A DNA stretch of 63,553 nucleotides, counting the filler, from Octopus bimaculoides (Eukaryota): the NCBI RefSeq assembly GCF_001194135.2. It is 5 parts of 5 records of this genome, joined end to end, with 100 filler letters (N's around TTAATTAATTAA, not from the genome) between each part and the next. Parts side by side here need not be neighbours in the genome. Positions count along the whole stretch, not along the records: positions 1 to 31,136 come from NC_069005.1; 4 more parts are not named here. One strand, given 5' to 3'. Shown piece by piece: positions 2,196-5,300 of this stretch. The translations under genes were made by a program, and so were the position numbers. How positions within the stretch are numbered: position 1 is the stretch's first letter; every line of letters begins with the position of its first letter. Under the pieces are notes generated by a model. The model saw only the letters and a program-made list of their open reading frames with translations, had not been told where the DNA came from and did not search any database.

Positions 2196-2329
2196 CTATT
2201 AAGAGCGTTCAGCATTTCAATGACGACCAGTACAGACAAGGCCATGGTTTTAGGTTCAGGCGATTCAAAGATGTCGCAGTCGATGCCTTTGAAACGGCCT
2301 TCCTGTGCCGGACACTGAGAGTGATGGGT
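2196..2329 (-). CDS. SERCA: SERCA L7-8/M8 exon, copy B (134 nt): [44 protein letters not shown](S)
   Basis: Bounded by ctttag and gtaagg; same length and phase as copy A; TACTAAC branch motif upstream. Not in the ORF track. Confidence 0.95.
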
Positions 2330-5300
2330 CTAAAGAAATAGTATTAATTAATATTAAGGAGTTAGTAGGATTCATTAAAATAGTAAAAAATTAAGAAAAG
2401 TAAAAAAAAAAAAAATCAAATTGGTTTCAATTAAAAAAACAACAAAAAAAAAAACAATCCATCACCCTCTGTTGGGCTTCGTTAACATCTGCTCTGGCAG
2501 AAAAAAATTTGCGCAGTAATGCTGACAAATGATTATTATTATATTATTATTAATATTTTTCTCTTCACTCTCGTGTCCGTTGGTAGTAACAGCAGCTGCC
2601 GCGATCAGATTAATAGGATGTGAAAATGGTAAGATAAGTGATCAAGAGACTCAATTGAATTCCTCCTCCTGTTTCCGGTGACAACATCGTATCGAAAGGT
2701 AAAGGGAGGGAGAGGAGAATGTGGGGTGGGATGGGGAACTTTTTGTTTTCTCTTTTTTTTTATTTTTTCCTTTCACTTTTCTCTGAAGACATACTGAAAT
2801 ATTACAAAGCAATGGAAGATTTTTTTCTCCTTTTTTAATATTTTTTGTATCAATTTAAAAATTCCTTATGAAATTCCTTAGGGGAACATCCAAGATGTAA
2901 CCGTAGTAAGAAGGGAAGGTGGCACCAAGACTGGGCCTCCTATGTTTCTTTATTGGTTCCCGAAAAGATGAAACATAAAGCTGGCCCTGGCAGCATTTAA
3001 ACCTAGAGTACAAAGACCAGGAACAAACAACGCTGTTTATCCAATGCTTTGATTGCCAAACACATGCATGCATGTATGTGTGTGTGTATGATACAACAAT
3101 AACCTTTAGACTTTCACAGCTAATGTTCCATTGCTTTTAAAATAATATTTCATAATATTACATTGCAACAGATATGCAGACAAGTTTTTTTCTTTTATTC
3201 TTAGAAGCCATACAAGGATTGGTTTTTAAAAAGTAACACCAGTAAATTATTTTTTAGATTATTATATATATGTATAAAAAAAATAAAAAATTAGTCATTA
3301 TTATTATTATTATTATTACCATCATTGTCAATTGCTATTAAGAAGAGTCATGGTGGCTTCATGTTTAAGTTTATAAGAAAACATGCATTATTTATCAGCA
3401 GAAATGCAAAGCATCAGGTCAGTTCCTATGGAACATACAAGACATTCTTTCTCATTAAAAAAAAAAAGTTTTTGTTTTGGATAGATACAGTTGACTCATA
3501 TCTAAATCTATATGGACTGGTATCTATCTGTGGATATATATCGATATCTCTACATGGATGTATATATATATCCGCAATGATATAGGATTGGAGAAAGAGA
3601 AAGAAATTGACATTTTGTATTTCTGCCCCGACGCCTGTGTGTATGTACGCGCGCACGCATTATATATATATATATGATATTATTATATATTATATAATAG
3701 AGGTGTATAAATGAAGAACACAGGTACTTATATATTTTTATACACTGTCATTTATGTTGAAATTAGTTACGGAAATAAATATTAATGATATTTGTATGGC
3801 TCAAAAAATAAAAGAAAGAAAAACTTGTCAGCATTATCACCATCCTCGCCCCCAACTAGACTATCAGCAAACTCTGAAAGCTTTTGAAGGTTCAATACCC
3901 AGAACCTTATGTTTTGCGAAACAGAGAAAGTAAGGAAAAAAGAAAAAAAAGAGAAAAATGAATTTTTCCCAAATAGGAAGGAATGACACAAGAAAGTGAA
4001 CACGAGGTACCGTGTCTTGAAATTGCTTCAGTTTCCAAGATCTGTAGTCTTTCAATACCCCTCCCTCCTCTAACAATAAGGCAATGGTTCTGACATGAAC
4101 AAATAAGATCCAAGCTGTAATCTAGCTTAACGTAAGGGTAATTTTTTGATCCCCTCCCTATTAATGAGGGGACTAAACAGTTTTACGTCTATATAATTCT
4201 TCTTCATCACGGTGTTGGACAAGCTATAAAAATTTAAAACCAGCTTCATTTTAAACATGGCAGCTTCTCCACTCATTTCAATCCATACAGGAACCTTGGG
4301 TAGTGCCTGCCCTTCTCTCTATTGAGAGACAAACCCTGTCAGAAGGGGTATGAGCGGATTCAATGTGAATACTTTCAAACTACTCAGATGTTGCATTGTG
4401 TACAATCCTGGATGACCTTAGACTGCAACAAGAACTACAGTTGAGGGCAGCAATACCAAACTCCTTCATTCCCCAAATACTAAGTGTAAAGCTGAGGCAA
4501 AGTTGAGCCTTGCACGATAAATAACCAGGGGAATTCAAAACGATGGCAGGAGGGGAGAAGCAGAGGGGGCAAGGAGGAACAACCACAAAGGATTCAAATC
4601 TAAGCCATTCACAGTCCACTGGTCCTTAGTAAATTTAAGGTCACCCACAGAAGGAGAATTCAAATGAGTTAACCATGTAAAAAGAAAAAAATATATATAC
4701 ATAAACAAATTAGTAAAATACACCAAAAAATGAACAAAAACAATACATTAAAAAAGAATATAAAAAGACAAAAGAAAAAAAATTTGTTTTAAAAGTTAAT
4801 TTGGAGGGGTTGGTGGTTGTTTGTGTCACTATGACTACACTGAGAAAAAATTACCTGTTGAGAGCATTAAGCATCTCTATGACTACCAGGACTGATAGAG
4901 CCATGGTCTTGGCAGCAGGGGCTTCAAATATACTACAGTCAATACCAGCGAATCTTGTTGGTTCAGCAGGACACTGCATGTGGTGGGTCTGCGAGAGGAC
5001 AGGTCAAGTTACACCGACAGAAAGTTTGAAAATTATTTAGCAGCACATATCAAAATGAGCGAACAAATGTTCAAAGTTTTATTCAGAAAATCCAGCCATG
5101 GCATTTTATTTATTATCTTGATTTTTTTTTTTCTTTCCTGTTTTGGGAGAAGACTGGTTCGGTTGAATAAGATTTGTATATATTTTTCTAGACTTGCTTT
5201 CAAATCTCATGTTTACAGTATATATTTAGAATACTTTTTTTTTGTATTTTTATCTACACAATATTTCAATTGTTTTTTTGTTTCTTTTGTTCCTTACTTG

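Follow-up and report, generated by a model that had tools for sequence, protein, structure and literature searches.

Can one SERCA gene give rise to pumps that differ inside the protein rather than at its end? The question is raised by a locus of Octopus bimaculoides (NCBI RefSeq assembly GCF_001194135.2) in a stretch of 63,553 nucleotides, filler included, that we refer to as the window; it joins five parts of five records of the genome, and positions 1 to 31,136 come from NC_069005.1. On the minus strand, at 2196..24783, the window holds a SERCA (P-type IIA Ca2+-ATPase) gene in which one exon occurs twice in tandem. In the papers found, alternative splicing of SERCA is described as C-terminal only (PMC3527596; PMC6987452), in agreement with the first-pass annotation of this window, which gave known SERCA splicing as mainly C-terminal, and our literature search found no description of an internal SERCA exon pair such as the one reported here. 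We consider it very likely that the two exons, denoted A and B, arose by tandem duplication and are used in a mutually exclusive manner, that they yield two pumps differing at the luminal L7-8 loop, and that they go back to a single old spiralian duplication kept since. The A and B isoforms already sit uncommented in RefSeq and UniProt, and the type of splicing event is itself known.

A rabbit SERCA1a query, used as a guide only, was matched to the window by tblastn; residues 109-914 follow one another without rearrangement between 24783 and 2196. Only residues 871-914 were matched twice, and every other SERCA segment once. The doubled segment follows the constitutive M7 exon (86 nucleotides; 8852..8937, minus), which ends at 8852 in phase 0 with the donor CTG/gtaggt. 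Exon A (4855..4988, minus) extends from cgcag/ACCCAC to CAACAG/gtaatt and exon B (2196..2329, minus) from ctttag/ACCCAT to AATAG/gtaagg; as had been proposed from the sequence, both comprise 134 nucleotides, have AG/GT ends and pass from phase 0 to phase 2. They are separated by an intron of 2525 nucleotides with no N (2330..4854, minus) and, since the entire stretch 2190-6300 is free of N, they reside on one contig. Beyond exon B, its donor gtaagg is followed by an assembly gap of 166 N (together 2024..2195, minus). The gap itself (2024-2189) begins 7 nucleotides past the exon B donor junction, and the next exon (SLSENQSL...) lies outside the window.

Exons A and B are identical at 90 of 134 nucleotides (67%) and at 35 of 44 amino acids (80%). 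All 9 replacements fall within the first 26 residues, and the last 18 residues are identical in protein, with 12 of their codons differing synonymously; our recount agrees with the earlier hand count on each of these points. Among the replacements are those by which we define the two types, namely M4, E9 and P10 in the octopus A exon and S4, Q9 and E10 in its B exon. Alignment to SERCA1a of the PDB places the exon at T871-N914, a segment that includes C876, C888 and E908, as the first-pass annotation had stated. All nine differences map to the luminal L7-8 loop, in the neighbourhood of its two conserved cysteines, and M8 and E908 are unchanged. Seven loop residues are charged in B and 4 in A, which bears out the earlier remark that copy B is the more charged. 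The gene would encode two Ca2+ pumps that share the catalytic core, the M8 helix (with the Ca2+ ligand E908) and the luminal cysteines (C876/C888) and that differ at nine residues of the L7-8 loop, the B loop being more acidic as well as more charged than the A loop.

Isoform pairs that differ by this exon alone are available from three cephalopods. The UniProt pair of O. bimaculoides (A0A0L8FX15 for A, A0A0L8FWD6 for B), the RefSeq isoforms XP_029650916 and XP_029650915 of O. sinensis, and the Sepia pharaonis models CAE1326728 (A) and CAE1326730 (B) each show 0 differences outside the exon, as expected if two pump isoforms are made that differ here only. Across all sequences at hand, exon A is carried by P0143, O. 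sinensis X1, Sepia CAE1326728 and the de novo transcripts P0122-4 and P0243-6, and exon B by P0159, O. sinensis X2, O. vulgaris, Sepia CAE1326730, Argonauta and the transcripts P0057, P0125 and P0251-3. The de novo cephalopod transcripts were drawn from Logan and JGI assemblies; 11 such transcripts each have A or B and none has both. A further search with an 87-amino-acid protein returned short fragments only, of which the useful yield was P0057, a spliced B-type transcript, and no close cephalopod A type was found among the short fragments that it matched. Of the spliced environmental contigs, the 60 with a match to the motif all carried one copy; these are metatranscriptome sequences of other invertebrates obtained in a metagenome scan with the B peptide, with no cephalopod introns among them. 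Both A and B are thus present in spliced transcripts.

The reading frame provides a second line of evidence. Because 134 is not a multiple of 3, an mRNA with both exons or with neither runs into an early stop: joining A to B shifts the frame, as had been anticipated, and places a stop codon within exon B, and skipping A and B places one 3 codons into the next exon (computed with the Argonauta exon). This shows that the reading frame, if nothing else, keeps A and B exclusive in productive mRNA, and the early-stop products presumably would be removed by nonsense-mediated decay (NMD). Collectively, the single-exon-difference isoform pairs, the transcripts and the frame stops support the view that each mature mRNA carries exactly one of A and B. 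Two considerations weigh against this view: it relies on annotated and assembled products and on the frame argument rather than on read-level junction counts, and part of the public isoforms are automatic gene models. A separate observation concerns the public models P0133 (Batillaria), P0200 (Echinococcus multilocularis) and P0210, which contain both exon types in series. In all three, the gene-prediction program preserved the frame by shortening the first copy or by bridging it; they are probably annotation errors due to the tandem pair.

We then fetched the gene from six further genomes (Argonauta hians, Littorina saxatilis, Capitella teleta, E. multilocularis, Lingula anatina, and Lineus longissimus). 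Exon A followed by exon B, between M7 and the next exon, was found in 7 of 7 spiralian genomes, Octopus included, representing 5 phyla (molluscs, annelids, flatworms, brachiopods, and nemerteans). All 14 of these exons are exactly 134 nucleotides long with AG/GT ends, and the intron between A and B ranges from 57 nucleotides in Echinococcus to 3187 in Argonauta, where 13 kb separate B from the exon that follows it. The two exon types were likewise evident across spiralians when the 120 best SERCA matches were aligned, the B type following the pattern TH[HQ][SA]QCLAQ[DE]E[MR]F.... RefSeq isoforms of the same gene differ by A/B type in Littorina and Mizuhopecten, and cloned cDNAs of Tridacna and Lumbricus are of B type. 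In two arthropods (Tachypleus and a millipede) a single copy was found, fused to the M7 segment. The shared A-B arrangement in spiralian genomes and the one copy in two arthropods suggest that the pair probably dates to early Spiralia. This dating is tempered by the sample, which comprised 7 spiralians and 2 arthropods. With regard to the first-pass annotation, comparison with other genomes upheld a pair collinear on one gene and adds that the pair is no novelty of cephalopods, being shared across spiralian phyla. The long-contig Argonauta assembly, with the same order of exons, also removes the concern that copy B might belong to a separate paralog or that the copies might not be collinear.

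Two side observations emerged from these genomes. The A-B introns are short in Echinococcus (57 nucleotides; 9707-9763 of the fetched sequence L004) and in Capitella (122 nucleotides; 16043-16164 of L003), and splice-site crowding in these two taxa might add to exclusivity. In Lingula, the preceding M7 exon is also doubled (32206-32291 and 33013-33098 of L005, 86 nucleotides each) and is a candidate for a second mutually exclusive pair; a doubled M7 exon was not seen in the other genomes examined.

Comparison of octopod introns points to sequence elements that may govern the use of exon B. The introns of Octopus and Argonauta are almost unalignable, with the exception of about 35 nucleotides upstream of exon A and of three blocks that precede exon B. 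The block that adjoins exon B (93 nucleotides; 2330..2422, minus) includes a branch-point-like ACTAAC at 2361-2366 and a weak, A-rich polypyrimidine tract. The second, E2 (TTTCTGCCAGAGCAGATGTTAACGAAGC; 2476..2503, minus), is predicted to form a small local hairpin in both Octopus and Argonauta. The third, E1 (2563..2605, minus), is unique within the window and is identical to Argonauta at 38 of 43 positions, a 24-nucleotide identical run included. The core of E1, CGGACACGAGAGTGA (2565-2579, minus), is complementary to nucleotides 6-21 of exon B (2309-2324), and the predicted pairing comprises 15 base pairs with a bulged A at 2316, plus extensions. The conservation and the pairing of E1 are known from these two octopods. 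If formed, the E1 hairpin could enclose the branch point, the 3' splice site and the first 20 or so nucleotides of exon B, and it could mask the exon or act as an ADAR substrate. Given the conserved intronic elements upstream of it, exon B may be the regulated copy, although this is the weaker part of the proposal. A K-to-R difference in transcript P0253 was considered as a trace of adenosine-to-inosine (A-to-I) editing and was rejected, as the transcript is from a different species.

How secure is a single, old, functional pair? One could argue that one copy is an unused relic (a pseudo-exon) or that the duplication is an artefact of assembly or of haplotypes, and it is true that the window is from a gap-rich draft in which an N gap begins 7 nucleotides after exon B. 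However, no gap interrupts the contig stretch that holds A and B, the long-contig Argonauta assembly has the same layout, and each copy is present in spliced transcripts. The two exons differ at 44 of 134 nucleotides, with a proportion of synonymous differences (pS) of 0.92, which is saturated, and of nonsynonymous differences (pN) of 0.16, and therefore are not haplotypes. Between Octopus and Argonauta, the synonymous and nonsynonymous divergences (dS and dN) are 0.83 and 0.04 for exon A and 0.52 and 0.02 for exon B. The resulting dN/dS of about 0.04-0.05 per copy indicates that each copy is under strong purifying selection, as the first-pass annotation had gathered from the synonymous differences. 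We regard a relic or an artefact as extremely improbable. It is also conceivable that the pair arose independently several times, for example in cephalopods, or that it is continually homogenised, such that cephalopod A and B are not orthologous to those of other taxa. Several results weigh against a single origin in this respect. A neighbor-joining (NJ) tree of the 44 amino acids does not split A from B; cephalopod A groups with cephalopod B in 153 of 300 bootstraps and the split of all B types is recovered in 43 of 300. Within a lineage, A and B encode the same protein sequence in their 3' halves, as in both octopus copies, and the identity of the octopus B loop to B types (14-19 of 26 residues) is no higher than to A types (14-17 of 26). 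The mixing of A and B in the 44-amino-acid tree can be attributed to the 3' half, which is alike in both copies within each lineage. When an NJ tree was built from loop residues 1-22, one B clade was recovered (64 of 150 bootstraps) and the grouping of cephalopod A with B dropped to 8 of 150. Moreover, A and B types are told apart without exception by positions 4, 9 and 10, position 9 being E in 10 of 10 A types and Q in 10 of 10 B types, and position 10 being P (or H) in A types and D or E in B types. The exon, its boundaries, its size and the order of A upstream of B are the same in all seven genomes, and the octopus synonymous sites are saturated even in the half that is identical in protein, which argues that any conversion was not recent. 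Repeated origin or ongoing homogenisation thus appears improbable to us, and the loop tree, the diagnostic residues and the identical position, size and order make a single early-spiralian duplication the most economical reading of the sequences; partial gene conversion or several separate duplications keep a small probability. For the leech, the tree includes an A and a B sequence from two gene models that lie on different scaffolds and therefore may be separate genes.

The choice between A and B may involve no RNA structure at all but depend on splice-site strength and protein regulators, with NMD clearing the wrong products; E1 and E2 would then be conserved as protein-binding silencer or enhancer elements or as an intronic transcriptional enhancer. 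We give this explanation a little less than an even chance. It is consistent with a generic test of exon-versus-intron complementarity, in which E1:exon B did not rise above shuffled controls, and with the finding that no comparable pairing was present in Littorina, Lingula, Lineus, Capitella or Echinococcus. A docking-site/selector arrangement of the Dscam type was not found either, E1 pairing with exon B itself, and each of the four splice sites that flank A and B is a U2-type GT-AG site, with no U2/U12 incompatibility found. A further point against the hairpin is that Octopus and Argonauta are too alike in E1 and exon B for covariation to show. A 60-nucleotide duplex scan, which was noisy, identified no reproducible partner of exon A or of its upstream intron in both octopods. 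On the other hand, the start of exon B is the best partner of E1 in Octopus (-40.4 kcal/mol, z of -4.5, among 646 60-nucleotide windows from M7 onward) as well as in Argonauta (-46.0 kcal/mol, z of -4.4, among 1919 such windows). The helix is kept in the minimum free energy and centroid folds of the segment from E1 to exon B in both (z of -2.2 in Octopus and -6.4 in Argonauta), and E1 is among the very few intron blocks that can be aligned. Since the generic complementarity test was not significant, we regard the predicted E1:exon B hairpin as suggestive and as a lead only.

Returning to the single duplication, we envisage that it took place once, before the split of the spiralian phyla, and that both versions have been kept since. 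Exon A would be closer to arthropod and vertebrate SERCA and B would be the derived form, with the 3' (M8) halves of A and B co-evolving within each lineage. Codons 23-44 were observed to change jointly per lineage, as seen in K897 and V906 of both cephalopod copies and in NPKPK...IEIF of both leech sequences. These matching changes suggest either that the M8 halves co-evolve with the remainder of the pump or that gene conversion took place long ago.

What the two loops do may relate to the luminal surroundings of the pump. At least three C-terminal variants of spiralian SERCA were observed: a short one (...DDYPGFF), an intermediate one (...DV...KK) and a long one (...DGKN followed by a hydrophobic TM11-like tail). 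Among the de novo cephalopod transcripts, those with the TM11 tail (P0251-P0253) carry B in 3 of 3 cases, and seven with the short tail carry A. A strict coupling of exon B to the TM11 tail was nonetheless rejected, as it fails outside cephalopods: the TM11 tail is found with A too in other spiralians, which counts against a general link between the two. Human SERCA2b has a luminal tail that comes close to the TM7-TM8 loop (PMC7423393). The output of the A/B choice most likely would be a tuning of the luminal face of the pump toward redox or chaperone partners of the Cys876-Cys888 loop; a fit with a SERCA2b-like TM11 and luminal tail is an alternative target. The fullest version of this scenario would have an A/B switch more than 500 million years old and common to all Spiralia that fits the L7-8 loop to luminal partners (the TM11 tail or oxidoreductases of the endoplasmic reticulum), with octopod exon B controlled or ADAR-recoded via the E1:exon B hairpin. 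Taken as a whole, we consider this version rather unlikely.

The octopus exon pair has parallels in several known systems. As in C-terminal SERCA splicing (vertebrate SERCA1a/b, 2a/2b and 3a-f; Artemia, Caenorhabditis elegans and Pinctada fucata A/B/C), several pumps are made from one gene, and octopus and its relatives also share the short (DDYPGFF), intermediate and TM11-containing, 2b-like tails with those systems. Unlike them, octopus swaps an internal exon that codes for L7-8 plus M8. All three cloned Pinctada cDNAs are of A type, and the Pinctada study therefore missed the A/B event. Muscle myosin heavy chain genes contain an ancient cluster of mutually exclusive, tandem-duplicated exons (PMC3912159). 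The octopus pair resembles these in having neighbouring homologous exons of equal length and phase, one per mRNA, that are kept across phyla, and departs from them in belonging to another gene, in having two variants only and in an exclusivity that is guaranteed by the frame (134 nucleotides). The alpha subunit of the Na+/K+-ATPase of arthropods (Drosophila Atpalpha) also has mutually exclusive exons, which are reportedly the subject of a barnacle paper by Lind and colleagues from 2013. Here too a P-type II ATPase is diversified via internal alternative exons; the octopus case concerns another pump, another region and another clade, and the two arthropod SERCA genes examined are single-copy for the exon. 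In chicken beta-tropomyosin, exon 6B is reportedly repressed by a stem that it forms with the intron upstream of it (work by Libri and by Clouet d'Orval, both dated to 1991). The predicted octopus structure is similar to the 6A/6B case in that the downstream exon pairs with conserved upstream intron sequence and encloses the branch point and 3' splice site, but the E1 stem is a predicted one and shows no covariation. Editing by ADAR makes use of editing-site complementary sequences, for instance at the Q/R site of GluA2, and recoding is heavy in cephalopods. Like such sequences, E1 is conserved, lies in an intron and is complementary to part of an exon, and it occurs in a group with heavy A-to-I recoding; it differs in that the unpaired A (2316) is a bulge rather than the usual A-C mismatch.

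With respect to the remainder of the gene, the tblastn matches and a splice-junction model cover approximately residues 109-914 (SERCA1a numbering). The splice-aware model has 19 coding exons in the window, with GT-AG introns and one AT-AC exception. Window residues are identical to those of UniProt A0A0L8FX15 and A0A0L8FWD6 across the exons present in those models, which identifies the locus as the O. bimaculoides SERCA gene. The best database matches are named SERCA, the best PDB matches of the window protein are SERCA1 and SERCA2 (E of about 1e-74), and Pfam PF00690, PF00122, PF00702 and PF00689 were assigned. The translated exons contain the SERCA signature, namely DKTGT, the A-domain TGES and the Ca2+-site residues, which include E309 of PEGLP, E771 of M5, N796, T799 and D800 of M6, and E908 of M8 (within VVIEMLN); the residue numbering of the C-terminal part was checked against PDB 1iwo. 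A small exon that would code for approximately AEGEISAM is lost in the 500-N gap at 12641-13140. The public 885-amino-acid O. bimaculoides models skip three real exons (24113-24033, 23431-23346, and 22404-22338, TGES included), omit part of 13336-13147 as well, and are about 112 residues shorter than their 997-amino-acid relatives.

The AT-AC intron is of U12 type (11289-12345, minus) and is flanked by exons 12439-12346 and 11288-11162; its signals are ATATCCTT at the 5' end, a branch-like TTCCTTGAC and ...TTAC at the 3' end. The same intron occurs in Argonauta and Littorina, and no intron was present at this position in Capitella, Echinococcus, Lingula, Lineus, Tachypleus or the millipede. 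Upstream of exon A, a 95-nucleotide stretch (5634-5728) matches Argonauta (L001 69473-69565) at 75% identity. The match is non-syntenic, being downstream of exon B, and the stretch is probably a dispersed repeat. An Rfam search of the window returned no match.

SERCA is among the most thoroughly studied membrane pumps. Molluscs, annelids, flatworms, brachiopods and nemerteans appear to have retained an internal axis of its isoforms for about half a billion years. The long retention of this second axis suggests that the L7-8 loop has a function open to tuning separately from the catalytic core. With nine residues exchanged in octopus, A and B constitute a natural minimal pair for probing the role of the loop, for which Ca2+ affinity and turnover, redox control via the luminal cysteines and docking of a 2b-type tail are candidates. 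Recognition of the pair is also of value for annotation, as public models join both copies or choose one arbitrarily (Batillaria and E. multilocularis), and its presence in the parasite Echinococcus bears on work on the SERCA of that organism. More generally, treating invertebrate SERCA as one protein misses half of its isoforms.

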